Source: Mantamonas sphyraenae STR306
Lineage: Eukaryota; Protista; CRuMs
Direction: 5' to 3'
Length of the DNA: 64,000 bases
NCBI GenBank assembly: GCA_026936335.1
Contig: JAPMXV010000012.1
Span: 124,001 to 188,000 of the forward strand
In this document: in pieces, positions 30,434 through 50,391 of the stretch
How the letters are laid out: each line of letters begins with the position of its first letter
Position numbering within the stretch: position 1 is the stretch's first letter
Program-made: the position numbers and the translations under genes
Notes under the pieces: generated by a model
Databases searched by the model: none
What the model saw: only the letters and a program-made list of their open reading frames with translations
Told to the model about the DNA's origin: nothing

Positions 30434-31714
30434 TCACACACTGTTGTCGGGATAGTAGAGGAGAGAGACGGCGAGGATGGCGTAGGCAAAGATGAGCAGG
30501 ATGCCTTCGAGCCAGTTGCTCTCGCCATCCTGGAGGACGACGTTGACAATGAGCACGGAAACAAAGAGGCAGACGGTGAGAAAGACATCAAAGAAGAGGG
30601 TGAGGGGCTGACCAATGATCCAGCCCACAAGGACACACACGGGAACGACAAAGACGGCAATCTGGGTGGAGCTGCCGACGACGACGCCGATGGCCAGATC
30701 CATCTTGTCATGATAGGCTGTGAGGAGGGCGGTGGCATGTTCAGCGGCATTGCCAGCAATGGGAAGGAGACAGACGGAGAGGAAGATGTTGGGGACACCC
30801 CAGGAGGCAGAGACAGCTTCGAGGGAGGCAACGACGAGATCAGCCTCGTACGAGACAAGCAGGGTGACCACGACCAGGTTGGTGAGGGCACCGGCAAGGG
30901 ACATGCTGGGTTCGTCCTCATCCTCCTCCTCGTCCTCAAACAGGTCCTTGTGGGTGTAGAGTTGAAAGACAAGGAAGGAGATGTAGATGGCCATGAGAAA
31001 GAGGGCGGAAATGCGACTGAGAGCCAACACGTCGGCCTCAATGACCGCCTCATCGCCACGACCATAGACAAAGACGGCGGGGAGGGCCATGGTGAGGATG
31101 ACCAGGAGGAGGAGGGAGCCGTTGGTGCCAGCGGCGGTGGCGTTGAATTGCTGGGTTTTGTACTTGGTGCCACCGAGGAGGAAGGCGGAACCCAACACAA
31201 GGAGCATGTTGGACAGGATGGAACCCAACAGGGAGAACTTGACCACATCCAGGAGACCCGCACGGAGGGCAAGGATGCTGACAATCAACTCGACAGCATT
31301 GCCAAAGGTGGCGTTGAGGAGACCTCCGATGGTTTGGGAGGTGCGCATGGCCACTTCGTCGGTGGCGGCACCCAGGATGGCAGCCATGGGGATGATGGAA
31401 GCCAGGGAGAGGGAAAAGGTGACACTCTTGGGCCACCCGGCAAGGTCACTGGCAATGCTGACAGGAAAGGCAAGCAACAACCAGTTGAGTTTGGATCCCA
31501 TCGATCCCATCGGTGACCAAATGCGGAATGATTTGGCAATGCCCACGGCCCAGTTGTCGTCGTCCACATCACCGCCGCCGCCGCCGCCGCCTACCCCGCC
31601 AGTGTCCACGCGTTTGTACGCCGTGTACTGCACCGATGGCGAATAGGCTTCGTCCTCATCACGGAGGCTCGTGCGTGTGTTGCGTCGTGCTCTTGAAACG
31701 GCTACGTTCGGCAT
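30434..31714 (-). CDS. CAX: Ca2+/H+ exchanger (CAX/VCX1 family)
   Basis: Alpha-1 GGLLNATFGNAVE and alpha-2 LPIAGNAAEH signatures, GSILSNMLLVLG, acidic loop, DGESNWLEG. Confidence 0.97.
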   Translation of the reverse strand: MPNVAVSRARRNTRTSLRDEDEAYSPSVQYTAYKRVDTGGVGGGGGGGDVDDDNWAVGIAKSFRIWSPMGSMGSKLNWLLLAFPVSIASDLAGWPKSVTFSLSLASIIPMAAILGAATDEVAMRTSQTIGGLLNATFGNAVELIVSILALRAGLLDVVKFSLLGSILSNMLLVLGSAFLLGGTKYKTQQFNATAAGTNGSLLLLVILTMALPAVFVYGRGDEAVIEADVLALSRISALFLMAIYISFLVFQLYTHKDLFEDEEEDEDEPSMSLAGALTNLVVVTLLVSYEADLVVASLEAVSASWGVPNIFLSVCLLPIAGNAAEHATALLTAYHDKMDLAIGVVVGSSTQIAVFVVPVCVLVGWIIGQPLTLFFDVFLTVCLFVSVLIVNVVLQDGESNWLEGILLIFAYAILAVSLLYYPDNSV

Positions 31715-31815
31715 GATAGTGTGCTCCTATGGTCGCCTTTGTCTTGAAGAGTGCCGTTTGACGAGCTGAGCGCGGACGCAGGTTGAAATGCCCCGGATGG
31801 AGCAGGAGAATCGAC

Positions 31816-32868
31816 ATGTCCAATGCAGGTGGGTTGGGGCCCAGGGACAAGGTGCAACAGGTGGCACAACGCATGCAGGAGGCACATGCCATGTTGGAAG
31901 GTCTGATTGAGGGCCATGTGGGTGAGCAGGTGTCTCTGGTGCAACACAGCAGCCGCCTGTGCACCGAACGAGCACAGTGGATCATACACAGAGCCTTTGG
32001 AGCCACCCAACATTCAGTGGGTGTCATGCAGCAGTTGGAAGTGGCCCTGGAGGCATTGCAGGGTCAGCAACTGGGCTCGGAGTTTGCCACGCATCTGCAG
32101 GGGTCCACACTGCATGATTTCGCACACATGGAAGGGGTGGAGGCACTGGTGGGTGTGAGCAAGGGCCATCTGGCAGATCTGCAGGCTCAGGCTCAGAGTG
32201 TGGAGGCGGAGCATGGGAACATGGAACAAGCAGTGGCCGTGTGTCTCAACGCAGCACGCACACTACGCACGCCCCCACGGCTGGTGTTGGATGATGAAGG
32301 CGACGGAAGAAGTGGCACTCGTGTGCGTGTGCAACAGGTGCGCACCTACGGCCAATTGTACAATGCGGTGTGGCAGGAGGTGGGTGGGGTGAGCGAAGCG
32401 CTGCGAATGGCGTTGCAAACTGTGCGTCGGACCAAGGAACACCTTGTGCAGGTGGACAGAGACATGGATGCCACCATGCAGGGGTTGCAGGTGGCTGTGG
32501 AGGACATGGCCAACCTGGTGGTGTGGTACAATGCCTTTCTGCGTGGGTTTGAACCTCTCAAGGGGGAGATCCGACGACGGCAGGCGGCTCAGCGACACCA
32601 TCGAGAAGTGGTGCGACTCATGCGACAGCAGTTGGAAGCAATGTGGCAGACGGAACAGGAACAGCGGGTGTACTTCTTTGAACAGTTTGGACGGTTCTTG
32701 CCACAGGACATGTACCCGGAGCTATTGGACGAACCACAAGCGTATCGAATATTCCGGGACGAAGGAGGGGAACAGGAGGAGGGAGAAGAGGACAGGGAGG
32801 ACGGGGAGGAGGAGGACGGAGAGGGGGAGGGGGAGGACGAGGAGGACGGGGAGAAACACACGAATTGA
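31816..32868 (+). CDS. ATG17: Autophagy scaffold ATG17-like protein
   Basis: Helical protein ending in LVVWYNAFLRGFEPLKGEIRRRQ...EQEQRVYFFEQFGRFLPQDMYP, matching the Atg17 C-terminal Y..F...Y..L..E..RR / E...R..F....G.FLP pattern. Confidence 0.8.
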   Translation: MSNAGGLGPRDKVQQVAQRMQEAHAMLEGLIEGHVGEQVSLVQHSSRLCTERAQWIIHRAFGATQHSVGVMQQLEVALEALQGQQLGSEFATHLQGSTLHDFAHMEGVEALVGVSKGHLADLQAQAQSVEAEHGNMEQAVAVCLNAARTLRTPPRLVLDDEGDGRSGTRVRVQQVRTYGQLYNAVWQEVGGVSEALRMALQTVRRTKEHLVQVDRDMDATMQGLQVAVEDMANLVVWYNAFLRGFEPLKGEIRRRQAAQRHHREVVRLMRQQLEAMWQTEQEQRVYFFEQFGRFLPQDMYPELLDEPQAYRIFRDEGGEQEEGEEDREDGEEEDGEGEGEDEEDGEKHTN

Positions 32869-32879
32869 TTTGAACTTTA

Positions 32880-32901
32880 CAGGCTGTTCGGTTCAAATTG
32901 A
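32880..32901. repeat. Terminal inverted repeat, Fanzor-downstream end
   Basis: CAGGCTGTTCGGTTCAAATTGA preceded by TA. Confidence 0.75.
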
Positions 32902-33022
32902 AACTTTTGTGTGAGCTGGCGCAACGCGATTGGGCTCGGGAAAACAAAACCTACGTCCTGTGAGGAGTGGTATACACTCAGTGTTGGTTGGTTGGTTGGT
33001 TGACGGTTCTGGTGCCCCGTCC
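32880..33022 (-). ncRNA. Candidate Fanzor omegaRNA scaffold (may extend into the ORF 3' end)
   Basis: Lies between the nuclease stop and the element end, the canonical TnpB/Fanzor position. Visible stems: GAGTG/CACTC (32965-32979) and nested TTTTGT..GAGC / GCTC..ACAAAA (32905-32949). Confidence 0.55.
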
Positions 33023-36000
33023 TCAGCCTGCACTCGAATTCGCCTCCAGGTTCTGTGCCTCGCCGTCCACATTCTCTGGCAGACCAATCTTGCTTCGAAA
33101 CGTCCTTCCGATCTGACTCCGTTGCCAAACCTTGGTCATGCACCATATGGTGTGGCCGCGAAGGGCAGCATACACCTTGTTGGCGATCGCCTGCGCACTC
33201 GCGAAATCCCTGTTCCGGTGCATCTCACATCGCTCGCAGTACTTGACACGCGCAGTGCGGTCACTTCCGTGCTTGCTCTTGTGCACACTGCCACATGTGG
33301 GACATCTCAGCGTCGTATTGCACTCGTTCACACGCACAACAATCATGTTGTGCTTGGCCAGCTCCTCCAGTTTCTTCACTCCACCACGGCCGCCCTTGAA
33401 TCCGTCACCGATGCACAGCAGTGTGATGCGTCGCAGTTGCCCCTCCTCCATCAGTGTGATGCCTCGCACTTGCCCCTCCTCCAACTCCAACTGCATCTTC
33501 TCTGTCGCCCGCACCTGTGCCAGCCATTGCTCCCTCATCTTTCGGATCCGTCTTTTCTGTTCGCGTCGATCATGCGTCTTGCTGTCGCCCCTCTGGCTGC
33601 ATCCCTCATTGAACTGAGCGGATGACCCTTGTTCAGACTCCAGGATCTTGCCGCTGCACTGACTCTTCACCACCCGTCCGGCCCTGGCTGCGGTGTGCAC
33701 GTCCACAAACAACCCAGATCGTTTGCTTCGCAGTTCCTGCATCTTCTCACGCACTGTCGCCGAGAGCAGAGCGTTGTCGCGCTTGATCCCTGTCCTGCGC
33801 TCCATGGCACCCAGTGACGGTGGTGAAAAACGCCAGGCGTCTGCAAAGTGAAGCACATTGTGGTTCTCAACGAGCTCCGTGCGTGGGATGTACAGAGCTG
33901 AAGGCGCATTCGAAATGCCTGGATCCATGGCAAGGAACTGCAAGCGCGCATTTGCCTTCGAGCTCAATGGGATGAGCCTGGAGAACGAGCTCACAACACC
34001 GTGTGGTCGTCTGCTGTGCTCCATGGACTCTGGGCACAGCTTCAGGGCAATGATCTTGTCCGCCGATTTTGGAAGCCACTTGCGGAGCAGCTTATGCACA
34101 GCCTCGGTCTGTGTTTCAGTCGCTCCGTCGCCGTCGGCCTCGTGTGGGTCCTCAACCTCCTTCCCACGCTCCCGGTGCTGGTGTGCGGCCACGTACATGG
34201 CAACCTGGCACAGACGGATAGTCACAGCAGCAACACGTTCGATGAGGCGTCGTTGGTTGCCTTGATCCTCAGTGTGTGCGTCTTTGTCGCGGCCACCCCT
34301 TTCCGACGTTCCTTCCAGGGCACCCTTGCCATGAATCGCAAAGTTGTACCTGGGTTTGCTGTGAGACAGAAACGGTGACGATTGTGCACGCTCAGCAAGT
34401 GGCGCATCCTCCAGGAACCCCACATTGCCCTTCAGGAAGCGCAGCAGCTGGGCGTCATCGACTGGTTTCGTGTCTGACAAAGACGTAGCGGTTGGATTGC
34501 GGAGCAGATTCAGACACGCACGCAAAGTAGGGAACAGCGAGAGCCGTTCATCGGGAAGGATGAGATGTTCCAGGTAGTACAACCGGCGTTGGCCAGGCCC
34601 TGCCGGCACCTGCCAATGGCGAACGTGCAGAGCGTGTACCGCAGAGAAGAGGCGGATGGACAGATGCCCATCGTTGATGAAGGGTGTCTTTGAAATCCTG
34701 GGCGCGTGCATAGGGTCAAGCACGGCGAAAACGTTGAAGGCCGCGAGCAGGAGCGGGTCTGTGTACGTGCCCATGTCCTCCCCTGGGATGATGTTGTGGT
34801 CCTCATTGTGCGTGACAACACGTGCTGTGCCGTTGGCGCACCTGGATGCACACACTTGCATCGCCTTGATGGCGTCGCGCGAGAACAAGCGGCTGCTCCC
34901 GTTCTCCTCCCCGATCTTGACCATGTGCCACGCAAACGAAGCCCTCAGGGCATGCACATGTTGGCCATTACGAGCCAGCTTTGCCCCCCTCAGCCAGCTG
35001 CCCACGGCACAGTCGCACGGGCCTCCTGCCACGCAATGGGGACACGGAGGTGGAAAGTACTCGCCTTCTGAGGAGCACGCACCTGGACTGGATGTGACCG
35101 CACCGCACAGAATGGACCACGCAAGCATTGTGTCCTCCTTGTCTTCCCAGCAAACATCCAGCAACCCGTCACAGAGTGCGGAAAGGGCCCATCGTCCAAA
35201 CAGCCTTTCCCGTTGGACCGCGAGCTGGTGATGAAGAGACTGTTTGACCGGGTACAGCTTGCGTGTGGACTGGCATTCTCTGGCCAGCTCGTACGCGCAA
35301 ACATGAGAGTCGGCGCCGGAGTCGCTCGGATCGTTGCACATCAGCGCCTTGTACTTGTCCACAGAAAGCCCCACCACTTCGCGCAGCACAGTCGCGACCG
35401 CGTGCTCGCATGCCTTGCTTGTTGGTGTGTCTTGAGCATCAGTGTCCTCTTCGTCATCCACTCCTTTGTGCAGGCGTTTGACAACTGCCAGGACATCACG
35501 GCGCTCGACGTCGCCGTTGCTTGCCACCACCAGGTCGACCAAGTTGTCAACGGCCTGGTTGATCAGCATGACCTTCCAGCTGGTCAACACGAGTGCAGCT
35601 CCCCGCTGGCACAGGTCTGTGAAGGCTCCACTGGGGAGACAACGCAGGTCGATGCCACACCTCGCTTCCTCGGGTGCCAGCTCATCCAGATACTCCGCAA
35701 CGACTCCACCGCTCGGTTGTCTGCTCAACACGAGGTCAGCTGTCACAGAGATGTACTTGGGGAACTTGGGGAGCTTCGGGGTTGCCTCGCATGTGATCTC
35801 CACCTCAGACGGCGGCTTCAGGTAGATTCGGCCTACCTTGAGCTGCAGGCAAGCCGACAGCATGTTCTCGAGTTCTTTGCTTGGTTCCAGCAGACCACAC
35901 TCGAGCAAATCATACTGGATGGCAACGATTAGCCCAAAGGCGTGCGCCATCGCATCCAACTCTTCCACGGATCGTGCGTTGATGAGCGCAGCATTTCGCA

Positions 36001-38497
36001 GTTTCTCGAGGCTGCCGAGCTCCACCACACACGAAGACGATGCCAGACGCTCAGTATGGTCCGAGTCCAGCTTCGGTGTCGAGAAGCCCATGAATACTTC
36101 CCACTCGTCGTCCTCGGGGTCCGGCAGAATTGTGTTGATCACTGCGTCCAGTCGCGAGGCACCGTGGCCATCGTCATCGTCGTCTTGCTTTTGGTACACG
36201 TAGTCGATGGCATTGCTGGCCATTGTGTCCCAAAAGACCGCCTCGCCAGAGCTGGGTGGCGTTGGACCAAGGATGGCGGCCAGCTGTTGATTGTCGCCCA
36301 CGAACACGTCCATGGAGGCATCAACACCCGCCTTCTTCATCGCCTTGGTCATCTTCGTGTTGAGCTTGTCGCGCACGGTTGCCTCCAGCACGCCACGCAT
36401 CTTGCTGAGCCGCTCGCGCTTCCCATTGTCGGCATGCTTCTTGCACAGGGCTTCCCACTTCTTGACCGAGATCATGTTGTTGTACATGGCTGCAGGGTTG
36501 GTGTACTCAATCTCGTCTGTGCCCCGCGCCGCTGCCACAAGGCCCTCGACACCCTCTGCCGCCACGTCAACCGTCACCGGGGACGCGTGTCGGGATCCGA
36601 TGTTCTCCAACGGCACATGTGATGCATCGTGTCGCTTCATCGCCTCCCAACGCGTCCGAATCTGTTCCTTCAGGCCGTCCAGCGCGCCACGCAGGGTCTG
36701 TTCGCCCTCCAGCTGGCGCCCGTGCTCCACCACCTCTCCCGGTGGGAGCAGACGTGCCTTTCGCAATGTGTCATGGTCTGTCACGGCATAATCATTGGCG
36801 TAGGCCGCAAACAGGGAGCCAATGTGTCCGCCACCACCCAGATTGACTTGGCCCAGCACCTGAGGACCAGGCAGGCCACTCCAATCCAGCTCAGCTTTCG
36901 TTCCACCCGTATCGAACACGGCGTCCCATGCGTGCAATGACGTGAGGGTGTTGATCGTGCGGTCGTCGAAGCCCATTTGACACAGGTGGAACTTCACGGC
37001 AGCAAGGTACTTCTGAGCGTGCTCCTGCACCAGGTCCAGGTGCTTGGAAGCAGGTTGTGTGCCCCGTGTGCCTTGCAGTAGATGTGCCACGGACTTGTCG
37101 TCCCAAAGGATCGGTTGGTAGATGTACGTCAGCAGGCTCCCGCCGCCCGCCAGCAACTCATTCAGGCTCCCGGCATCCAGCCGCAGCATGTTCCGGCGTG
37201 GGGCTCGCACGGCTGCCTCAATGTCGCTCGACAGCAGCAACGCCGCCACGAGTGAAACCAACCGGCCGACGTGAGGCTCGACGATGGCGAAGCCAAGGCG
37301 AGGGTGCAGGAGAACAACTGGGTGCTCGGCGACGTTGTATCCCCAATCACTATCATGCAGGGTGATCACAAAGGTGACGTGTTGATCGTGGTTGTACAAA
37401 CGCACCAGCTCGTTTTTGACGTCGTCAGCCAGACATGCACCGGGGTTCTCATTCACCTTGTCGTTGCCACACTCGTACACATCGTGCTGGGAACACAGGT
37501 GTTTTACAGCATGATAGACAGCAACCTGCGCCTGTCCAGTCAAACTCAACGTATGCCCCTGTGCTAGTGTCTTCAAGTCGGCCTTCTCCCGTTTCAACTT
37601 GCGCAACGTCTTGCTCATGGTCGCCACATGCGCCAGCGTGTTCTCCATGCGCCGTAGGTGCGTGCCGAAGCTAACTGACTGGGCCTGCTCATCCAGAAAC
37701 TCGGGCTTCAGATCGCAGACGAGCACGTACTTGACATGCGCACTCCGAAGGTCCACCCGCAGTTCTGTGGCCGCTTTCTCAGCCTCGACACATCGTGTAA
37801 CCAGTTCACGCACCTTCTCTTCGGGTACGTCTGACACGCGGGCCGCCTCCTCCACGACCGTGTGGACCACGGAGCTGACATCAACCAGCACTTTCACGTC
37901 GCCTTCCAGCTGAGTCATGCCTTGCTCAAATTCGATACCGTAGGATGCCAAGATATCTTGCTGTCGCCTCGCCTTGCCATTGCCTCCTTGTCGCCCGTGG
38001 GCCAATTGGACCGACACCACTTGGTCCGTCTCAGTCGGTTTCCGTTTTTTGCCCTCCTGCGCTTTCCTTGGACGTCTTGCGACCGGGCTGTACTCCTCAT
38101 CCTCACTGTCCTCCTCATCATCGCTGTACTCCTCATCCTCGCGGTACTCCTCATAGTCGCCATAAACCGATTCCGTGTCCATAGCCGCCTGAGCGGCTGC
38201 AAACATCCTGACGCTTCCTACACCTCCCTCCACCTTCAAACTTCGGCGTGGCCCTTGCACGTCCACCACAGTCTCCCGGGCGCTTACACCAAGCACACAC
38301 ACATCACAGAATCGTTCTTGCAGTCCCACGCCATTGTCACAATGGACGGAAGCACAGACGTGGCGGCGCGAACGCTTCATTCCGGACCGCCCGGAAACCG
38401 AAAGGCCGTCCTCACCGTCGTTGTCAAGGGCGATGTTGCTGTGGCTACGTTTCCGTTTGTCATTATGCTTTGAATACTTTGCGTGGTGTTCGCTCAT
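33023..38497 (-). CDS. Giant Fanzor (TnpB-derived RNA-guided RuvC endonuclease)-like protein, ~1,824 aa
   Basis: C-terminal RuvC-I LAMDPG (D codon 33923-33925), CIGDG strand, RuvC-II VNECNTTLRCPTCG (E 33323-33325), KYCERC zinc finger and RuvC-III NRDFASAQAI (D 33206-33208). Intron-free intact ORF. Likely start ATG 38497; the ORF is open from 38635. Confidence 0.88.
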   Translation of the reverse strand: MSEHHAKYSKHNDKRKRSHSNIALDNDGEDGLSVSGRSGMKRSRRHVCASVHCDNGVGLQERFCDVCVLGVSARETVVDVQGPRRSLKVEGGVGSVRMFAAAQAAMDTESVYGDYEEYREDEEYSDDEEDSEDEEYSPVARRPRKAQEGKKRKPTETDQVVSVQLAHGRQGGNGKARRQQDILASYGIEFEQGMTQLEGDVKVLVDVSSVVHTVVEEAARVSDVPEEKVRELVTRCVEAEKAATELRVDLRSAHVKYVLVCDLKPEFLDEQAQSVSFGTHLRRMENTLAHVATMSKTLRKLKREKADLKTLAQGHTLSLTGQAQVAVYHAVKHLCSQHDVYECGNDKVNENPGACLADDVKNELVRLYNHDQHVTFVITLHDSDWGYNVAEHPVVLLHPRLGFAIVEPHVGRLVSLVAALLLSSDIEAAVRAPRRNMLRLDAGSLNELLAGGGSLLTYIYQPILWDDKSVAHLLQGTRGTQPASKHLDLVQEHAQKYLAAVKFHLCQMGFDDRTINTLTSLHAWDAVFDTGGTKAELDWSGLPGPQVLGQVNLGGGGHIGSLFAAYANDYAVTDHDTLRKARLLPPGEVVEHGRQLEGEQTLRGALDGLKEQIRTRWEAMKRHDASHVPLENIGSRHASPVTVDVAAEGVEGLVAAARGTDEIEYTNPAAMYNNMISVKKWEALCKKHADNGKRERLSKMRGVLEATVRDKLNTKMTKAMKKAGVDASMDVFVGDNQQLAAILGPTPPSSGEAVFWDTMASNAIDYVYQKQDDDDDGHGASRLDAVINTILPDPEDDEWEVFMGFSTPKLDSDHTERLASSSCVVELGSLEKLRNAALINARSVEELDAMAHAFGLIVAIQYDLLECGLLEPSKELENMLSACLQLKVGRIYLKPPSEVEITCEATPKLPKFPKYISVTADLVLSRQPSGGVVAEYLDELAPEEARCGIDLRCLPSGAFTDLCQRGAALVLTSWKVMLINQAVDNLVDLVVASNGDVERRDVLAVVKRLHKGVDDEEDTDAQDTPTSKACEHAVATVLREVVGLSVDKYKALMCNDPSDSGADSHVCAYELARECQSTRKLYPVKQSLHHQLAVQRERLFGRWALSALCDGLLDVCWEDKEDTMLAWSILCGAVTSSPGACSSEGEYFPPPCPHCVAGGPCDCAVGSWLRGAKLARNGQHVHALRASFAWHMVKIGEENGSSRLFSRDAIKAMQVCASRCANGTARVVTHNEDHNIIPGEDMGTYTDPLLLAAFNVFAVLDPMHAPRISKTPFINDGHLSIRLFSAVHALHVRHWQVPAGPGQRRLYYLEHLILPDERLSLFPTLRACLNLLRNPTATSLSDTKPVDDAQLLRFLKGNVGFLEDAPLAERAQSSPFLSHSKPRYNFAIHGKGALEGTSERGGRDKDAHTEDQGNQRRLIERVAAVTIRLCQVAMYVAAHQHRERGKEVEDPHEADGDGATETQTEAVHKLLRKWLPKSADKIIALKLCPESMEHSRRPHGVVSSFSRLIPLSSKANARLQFLAMDPGISNAPSALYIPRTELVENHNVLHFADAWRFSPPSLGAMERRTGIKRDNALLSATVREKMQELRSKRSGLFVDVHTAARAGRVVKSQCSGKILESEQGSSAQFNEGCSQRGDSKTHDRREQKRRIRKMREQWLAQVRATEKMQLELEEGQVRGITLMEEGQLRRITLLCIGDGFKGGRGGVKKLEELAKHNMIVVRVNECNTTLRCPTCGSVHKSKHGSDRTARVKYCERCEMHRNRDFASAQAIANKVYAALRGHTIWCMTKVWQRSQIGRTFRSKIGLPENVDGEAQNLEANSSAG

Positions 38498-38683
38498 TGT
38501 GCGCGTTTTCTTGCCCCCTGTGGCGCAGCTTGTTTGGCGTTCGGTCCTCCATCTGCAGGCCATACGGGCCAAATACAACGAGCACAGCCCCATGACACAC
38601 AAATGCAGGCGCCATGCCAAAGGTGGAATGAACAAACTTCAGAAAGGGGATTTTCATTGGCAACGGGGTTTGCGGCGCGAGGC

Positions 38684-38705
38684 TCAACTTGACCCGAATT
38701 CACTG
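38684..38705. repeat. Terminal inverted repeat, Fanzor-upstream end
   Basis: TCAACTTGACCCGAATTCACTG followed by TA. Confidence 0.75.
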
Positions 38706-38713
38706 TAGTTCCC

Positions 38714-50391
<11,678 letters not shown>

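Follow-up and report, generated by a model that had tools for sequence, protein, structure and literature searches.

The window analysed here, a stretch of 64,000 nucleotides of Mantamonas sphyraenae DNA, carries an open frame at positions 33023-38635 of its minus strand, on which all features of the gene and of its element located below also lie. Counted from the ATG at 38497, a start whose motif is common to 10 copies, this frame (33023..38497) encodes a protein of 1,824 amino acids in which a domain resembling the FEN group of 5' nucleases precedes a Fanzor half, Fanzors being RNA-guided DNA nucleases of eukaryotes that are related to CRISPR-Cas12. An element of the Tc1/mariner-IS630 type, 5.83 kb long (32878..38707; 5,830 bp with both TA duplications), carries this gene as its only cargo, and its limits are the points at which similarity to four near-identical and eight diverged copies ends. 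The element lies where two convergent host genes, one of them ATG17-like, leave just 17 bp between their stop codons. The neighbourhood (window positions 30434-32868 and 38714-50108) contains a Ca2+/cation exchanger gene (PF01699), the ATG17-like gene (PF04108) and a very long gene that is interrupted at a Thr-Gly repeat.

The giant ORF of about 1,820 amino acids announced in the original prediction proved to be real. The M. sphyraenae assembly that was searched (25,061,354 bases in 78 contigs) contains 13 copies of the window family with long frames, at 35-98% amino acid identity. A chance ORF or an opposite-frame artefact was ruled out, since these copies keep frames of 1,700-1,980 codons under purifying selection, with dN/dS values (Nei-Gojobori) mostly below 0.5. 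Between diverged copies, dN/dS was below 0.5 in nearly all regions, and reached 0.55-0.62 in the N-terminal 170 amino acids of two pairs. The full-length frame is unbroken in 11 of the 13 copies, L018 and L023 being frameshifted near the N-terminus. The description of the gene as intronless holds at the level of the DNA frame only; in the published genome (78 contigs, mean 321,299.41 bp, 59% GC) genes are mostly single-exon (PMC10492846).

The sole Pfam match in the whole protein was the TnpB zinc finger, PF07282 (TnpB/Cas12f TNB finger) matching amino acids 1713-1771 above cut-off with an E value of 8e-7. Around this finger, every component of the predicted Fanzor signature was found. The RuvC-I catalytic Asp of the DPG motif is D1525 (33923..33925), invariant in all aligned families; G1697 of the CIGDG motif (33407-33409) occupies, by motif position, the slot of the canonical RuvC-II Glu; the repositioned catalytic Glu is E1725 (33323..33325), whose spacing agrees with that of Ealt in the Fanzor fingerprint (Yoon et al., PMC10711439) and which is followed, after six residues, by the C4 finger C1732-x2-C1735-x18-C1754-x2-C1757 (33227..33304); and the RuvC-III catalytic Asp, placed by alignment, is D1764 in NRD (33206..33208). 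The protein thus shows the Fanzor pattern Glu-six residues-CxxC-x(12,18)-CxxC-x(4,8)-D, with E1725, x18, x6, D1764 and G1697, and also the motif of Bao and Jurka, D-X(125,275)-[TS][TS]-XX-C4-X(5,50)-RD, with X = 202 (PMC3627910). The DPG-to-E spacing of 197 lies beyond the 120-160 used for prokaryotic pro-Fanzors, which are linked to IS607 and not to IS630 (PMC10711439). An insertion of 13 amino acids in RuvC, a partial duplication (window ~33419-33484), was present in the five youngest copies and absent from other subfamilies.

The Fanzor body comprises about 1,000 amino acids (~820-1824). Its first part, amino acids 819-1289 (34631..36043), was modelled as a Fanzor1 WED/REC lobe with insertions, which matched SpuFz1 residues 18-343 with a VIA Z of 10.2 (rmsd 6.8, 275 aligned; next non-Fanzor 2.9). 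The Z scores of PpFz1 and GtFz1 were both 7.2, against 4.7 for ApmFz2 and 4.6 for TnpB, and a wide fold search placed GtFz1 first, above Fanzor2, TnpB and Cas12. For the middle part of the protein, the structural comparison returned the recognition lobes of SpuFz1, PpFz1 and GtFz1 as top matches, and the modelled lobe is nearer to Fanzor1 than to Fanzor2, TnpB or Cas12. The strand formerly likened to the TDG strand of Fanzor1 reads FINDGH (amino acids 1273-1284; 34646-34681) and lies at the end of the lobe match. In the model behind this match (amino acids 640-1810, 11-sequence alignment) the RuvC region had pLDDT values below 50, and the region of the kinked REC2 helix pair was poorly modelled. 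Because of the low confidence of the RuvC part, the intact-looking D-E-D triad is supported by sequence alone. By every sequence and fold test run, we regard the protein as of Fanzor1 type. The original prediction of an oversized Fanzor1-like nuclease thus stands as regards sequence and mid-protein fold, but the protein is not merely oversized, its extra half being a FEN-family domain and a linker. A prokaryotic contaminant or pro-Fanzor was ruled out by the eukaryotic flanking genes, the mariner ends and the Fanzor1 fold.

The first 174 amino acids (37976..38497, delimited by alignment) are of low complexity, mixed basic and acidic, with basic clusters at positions 14-17 and 141-153 that appear NLS-like, and with a small C4 motif (C-x4-C-x10-C-x2-C, positions 48-67) that is kept as far as a 35%-identical copy and may bind zinc. 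Amino acids 175-540 (36878..37975) were recognised by atlas search, model and fold matches as a FEN1/EXO1/XRN-like 5' nuclease domain (PIN fold, FEN group), and amino acids 541-818 (36044..36877) form a linker and helical region of about 280 residues with low to middling pLDDT and dN/dS of 0.27-0.5. Pfam and PDB sequence searches gave no match to the N-terminal domain of the window family. The atlas search with amino acids 160-560 led to clusters of the PIN/XPG clan, and an AlphaFold model of amino acids 150-700, built from 12 sequences, had a confident core (pLDDT mostly 80-90) in which the PIN core, the helical arch and the following helical domain are present. The Foldseek top 50 consisted entirely of EXO1, FEN1, T5 exonuclease, T4 RNase H, XRN and their kin (best E 8e-4), with EXO1, FEN1 and T5 first. 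In an independent wide fold search the top 15 rows were all of the FEN group, headed by EXO1 (Z 12.5 over 276 residues, rmsd 4.8) with XRN1 second (Z 10.8), and searches of atlas and viral libraries concurred, viral XRN and VHS-like proteins being among their matches. Since the XRN RNases score so near EXO1, the modelled fold does not fix the substrate of the domain. A transposase fused in the N-terminal half was ruled out, as a FEN fold lies there and other copies encode their transposase upstream, in a gene of its own.

Across 14 sequences with identities as low as 24%, residues D206, D262, D358, D382, D384, D425 and E270 were invariant, and the six Asp are kept from 97% to 24% identity whereas neighbouring residues vary. 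In the model, these Asp follow strands 1, 2 and 4, mark the beginnings of helices 4 and 5, and lie in the helical domain that comes next, and D206, D262, D382, D384 and D425 correspond to the four invariant Asp (after S1, S2 and S4, and before H5) and to the helix-turn-helix Asp of the FEN-like active-site layout (PMC5499597). The seventh acid is missing: Leu356 stands at the position of EXO1 E150, leaving D358 alone of the two acids before H4. L033 and L037 retain a Glu there, and several relatives have Thr, Ser or Gln; four acids can suffice for FEN-like enzymes (PMC5499597). The domain is under purifying selection, with dN/dS of 0.14-0.2. The helical arch of FEN1 carries Lys/Arg, which were not seen in register in the 175-540 domain. 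Altogether, model and alignment indicate a FEN-like fold with a reduced site, and not a canonical member of the group.

Analysis of the ends of the element revealed a left 22-bp imperfect terminal inverted repeat (TIR) starting with CAG, adjoined by the TA target duplication at 38706-38707 (38684..38707), and a right 22-bp TIR ending with CTG, adjoined by the TA duplication at 32878-32879 (32878..32901), both located by copy comparison and TIR pattern. All copies begin with TA-CAG and finish with CTG-TA in unrelated flanks, the TA being present at all 13 left ends and at all right ends but one, which has AA (12 of 13). The TIR pattern had 22 exact matches genome-wide, and its reversed control none. 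A TA duplication together with TIRs is the hallmark of Tc1/mariner elements. The window copy, without a transposase, is non-autonomous, and the longer copies L024 and L026 carry a broken IS630/Tc1 transposase (HTH; DDE_3, E 2e-13) upstream within the same TIRs. Related transposase frames of 350-440 codons occur at more than 15 other genome sites, one of them inside the giant-Fanzor element L030. These data establish that a Fanzor1 is encoded here in a eukaryotic, non-IS607 transposon. Near another copy, L021, an intact-looking IS630/Tc1 transposase frame (G000:C44:17518-18090) starts at most about 60 bp from the left end, outside the TIR.

Four copies are about 98% identical to that of the window, which indicates that the family moved recently; no empty allele of the window insertion site was found in the assembly. 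Subfamilies are 46-64% alike over 5 kb, yet 85-92% alike in the last ~700 bp, from which it follows that copies recombine. The homogenised segment, followed between the window (32878-33600) and the distant subfamilies L024-L026, has the appearance of polar recombination; this 3' mosaicism shows recombination, not its cause. The assembly also holds a single distant copy of about 25% identity (L028, G000:C52 ~257,500-263,600) in which the FEN-like domain is followed by a long acidic repeat and a frameshift shortly precedes the catalytic Glu, as well as remnants consisting of a 3' end only (G000:C43:152888-153064), a lone right TIR (C69:55133-55156) and a transposase fragment (C61:226647-226787).

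In Fanzor1 elements, the omegaRNA takes in the TIR and the target duplication and extends ~15 nt into the flank. By analogy, the candidate omegaRNA region of the window element would comprise, as an upper bound, the ORF end, a CAAC repeat, a hairpin, the right TIR, the TA and ~15 nt of flank as guide (32863..33130). Synonymous divergence in the last 40 codons was 0.14 against a background of 0.65, and 0.48 against 0.63-0.83 in the most distant copy, part of this conservation being due to recombination among copies. A 5-bp hairpin after the stop codon (32965-32979) was paired in all 10 aligned copies, with one compensatory change. The 3' region as a whole folded no better than shuffled sequences, and the candidate region had no meaningful match in Rfam. 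The data point weakly to an omegaRNA in the right end of the element. The CAAC repeat (window 32982-33002) directly adjoins the stop codon and differs in length between copies, with 2-3 units at one extreme and about 13 at the other. In the left flanks of the 13 sites, there is no G directly before the TA and A is favoured at -2 and -3, in a background that is mostly coding DNA; our guess for the TAM would be A-H-T-A.

The same architecture was encountered elsewhere in the genome, which contains at least 39 TnpB-finger matches, about 30 of them in frames of 1,480-2,250 codons belonging to several families and four in frames of 630-850 codons. Domain order was taken from the giant frames that were read, about 20 TNB-bearing loci entering the count only, and the other giant TNB-bearing frames examined also start with FEN motifs: SAD and D-S-D in L030-L032, L034 and L035, and EADD and D-T-D in L033, which matches PF02739 (E 1e-5). 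L030, L031 and L032 (G000 C57, C2 and C11) make up another family, whose elements measure ~7.8 kb and are 96% alike; upstream of their FEN-motif Fanzor lies an IS630/Tc1 transposase frame that looks intact. The ends of these elements are unlike those of the window family, and no TIR was found in them. A further TNB group of nine copies, mostly of ~1,850 codons, was counted on C8, C10, C25, C29, C30, C31, C45, C55 and C58. Three ~6.7-kb elements with similar TIRs (G000:C4:296220-302971, C43:588270-595020 and C44:41353-48037) match a profile of FEN-like domains from outside this genome with E values of 9e-13 to 3e-11, and their FEN-like domain is nearer to the outside relatives than is that of the window. 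A RuvC tree built without reference Fanzors had weak deep branches and fits one or several fusion origins.

Outside Mantamonas, a HMMER search of 1.8 billion representatives with the RuvC profile gave only 31 remote matches (best 6e-7), mostly DPG Fanzor1-like proteins or fragments, several of which are full-length (720-930 amino acids) and have no FEN-like domain. A FEN-like domain lies ahead of the Fanzor in three environmental contigs from other, unrelated samples. P0023 is a single frame of 1,224 amino acids whose N-terminal domain is clearly of FEN type and whose C-terminal part is a Fanzor, and in L037 and L039/L040, whose halves were compared as separate pieces, the FEN-type domain is encoded in the ORF just upstream of the Fanzor on the same strand. 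These outside relatives have the FEN-type GCD helix-turn motif and match EXO1 and Pol I by sequence, the profile of their FEN-like domains matching EXO1 with E 1e-4. The comparison of this profile with that of the window domain was not significant, so it is motifs, fold and domain order that link the two. No new homologue emerged from word-based searches with the whole protein, P0023 or the outside FEN profile, and DNA-pattern scans of viral and metagenome contigs gave no match. On L039, a river-metagenome contig, a 29-bp hairpin (L039:6050-6117) lies 70 bp past the Fanzor stop and is a candidate omegaRNA stem or element end. The occurrence of the fusion outside Mantamonas indicates that we are dealing with an architecture and not with one odd gene.

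Altogether, the anatomy and recent copying of the element, together with the fusion, the folds of its two halves and the conservation of catalytic residues, define, with high confidence, a two-nuclease Fanzor1 in a Tc1/mariner-IS630 cut-and-paste transposon. As to its function, the explanation that we favour, at somewhat under even chances, is a guided cut after which 5' resection promotes the copying back of the element. By analogy with Fanzor1, the protein would bind an omegaRNA from the right end of the element with the flank beyond the TA as guide. A transposase supplied in trans would excise the element, and the fusion protein would then cut the empty site left by excision, the TAM being the left flank ending in TA. 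At the break, the tethered FEN1/EXO1-like domain would trim or resect the 5' strands and so shift repair away from end-joining, towards homologous copying of the element from the sister or homologue; the element would thereby stay in place and rise in copy number. In favour of this explanation we counted the TIRs, TA duplications and copies, the transposase within the same TIRs and its intact-looking relatives elsewhere, the FEN fold, the invariant acids and low dN/dS of that domain, the Fanzor1 lobe, the recurring domain order and the recombination; against it, Leu356, the missing register of arch Lys/Arg, the closeness of XRN, the low-confidence RuvC model and the lack of an empty allele in the assembly. 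A human EXO1-based engineered editor is reported to increase HDR and decrease end-joining in comparison with Cas9 (PMC11107001), and engineered exonuclease-Cas tools are described as shifting repair outcome or raising editing (PMC11107001, PMC12337685).

The alternative that survives best, although we consider it unlikely, is that the FEN-like domain of the window family retains little or no catalytic activity and acts as a module for structure-specific binding of DNA or R-loops or for protein docking, while the Fanzor cuts alone. The Leu at the E150 position, the Thr, Ser or Gln of several relatives, and a domain sequence that has diverged beyond a match to Pfam or to the outside FEN-like domains would be expected in that case, but the invariance of six Asp from 97% to 24% identity amid changing neighbours is a pattern typical of metal-binding catalysis.

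Slightly less likely is an action of the domain on RNA, either trimming its own transcript 5' to 3' down to a protein-protected omegaRNA or degrading silencing or host RNAs. The rank of XRN1 as second-best fold match (Z 10.8), the viral XRN and VHS-like proteins among the matches, and the location of the candidate omegaRNA at the mRNA 3' end, overlapping or following the ORF end, are in line with such a role. On the contrary, EXO1, FEN1 and T5 come first by Foldseek, the outside relatives combine the GCD helix-turn motif with EXO1 and Pol I sequence matches, and ordinary Fanzor1s produce omegaRNA without such a domain.

A role of the domain in transposition, cleaning excision ends or insertion gaps and joined to the Fanzor only as shared cargo and for nuclear import, appears improbable: the element is of the cut-and-paste type and coexists with IS630/Tc1 transposases, and mariner elements with an endonuclease beside the Fanzor are known (PMC3627910), but in every case seen the domain is fused to the Fanzor and not to the transposase, and it is retained in copies without a transposase. 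Least probable of all is that the frame is not one working protein, being spliced, cleaved or internally initiated into separate FEN and Fanzor products, or that its RuvC is inactive, for although the two halves are separate frames in L037 and L039, a single uninterrupted frame has persisted in eleven copies despite deep divergence, P0023 is likewise one frame, the genes of the organism are mostly single-exon (PMC10492846) and the triad is invariant.

Returning to the cut-and-resect explanation, its wider form is that these proteins represent a class of eukaryotic RNA-guided effectors with two nucleases, present in several lineages and not described before, in which a RuvC cut and active FEN1/EXO1-like resection force homologous repair, that is, a natural cut-and-resect homing enzyme; we hold this a little more tentatively still. 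To our knowledge, the Fanzors described so far are single-nuclease proteins of about 600-800 amino acids. Published Fanzor1 proteins have mostly 600-700 amino acids (PMC11423790), with an upper size of about 800 (PMC10711439), and the mean length of Fanzors is 620 (PMC10530073). The window protein shares with the Fanzor1 proteins SpuFz1, GtFz1 and PpFz1 (PMC10432273, PMC11423790) the DPG, the repositioned Glu, the C4 finger, the RD and the WED/REC fold, together with residence in a TIR element with non-autonomous copies and a TA-ending left flank that resembles the CATA TAM of SpuFz1. It differs from them in its 1,824 amino acids, in a Fanzor body that by itself reaches about 1,000, and in the N-terminal FEN-like nuclease, its best outside match being only E 6e-7. 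The TA duplication, the TIRs, the mariner/IS630 transposase upstream in autonomous copies and the Fanzor-only derivatives are shared with the Tc1/mariner Fanzor1 elements PGv-1, PUl-1 and PUl-4 (PMC3627910) and with IS630-linked TnpBs (PMC10691335), but the GIY-YIG endonuclease of PGv-1 is a separate gene, whereas in the window element a FEN-family nuclease shares one frame with the Fanzor. In comparison with the FEN-like PIN nucleases EXO1, FEN1, T5 exonuclease, T4 RNase H, XRN1 and poxvirus G5 (PMC5499597), the domain has the fold and six of the seven acidic positions, but only 10-14% identity, Leu for one acid, and a fusion to an RNA-guided nuclease in a transposon. The combination of a 5' nuclease with an RNA-guided nuclease also recalls the engineered exoCasMINI (PMC12337685), T5exo-ErCas12a (PMC8945719) and the EXO1 editor (PMC11107001); unlike them, the present fusion is natural and under purifying selection. 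Our literature search found no paper on a Fanzor-FEN, Fanzor-PIN or natural exonuclease fusion, nor any treating Fanzor and Mantamonas together; the FEN-Fanzor fusion is thus a form that we have not found described.

A conserved end-processing nuclease offers a direct and testable handle on what Fanzors do for their eukaryotic transposons, and the genome of M. sphyraenae provides 13 natural sets of guide, TAM and insertion site. Should Fanzors maintain transposons through break-induced copying, the fusion of a resection enzyme to them would be expected. Exonuclease-assisted editors have until now been assembled by hand, and the fusion would also provide a template for them from nature.
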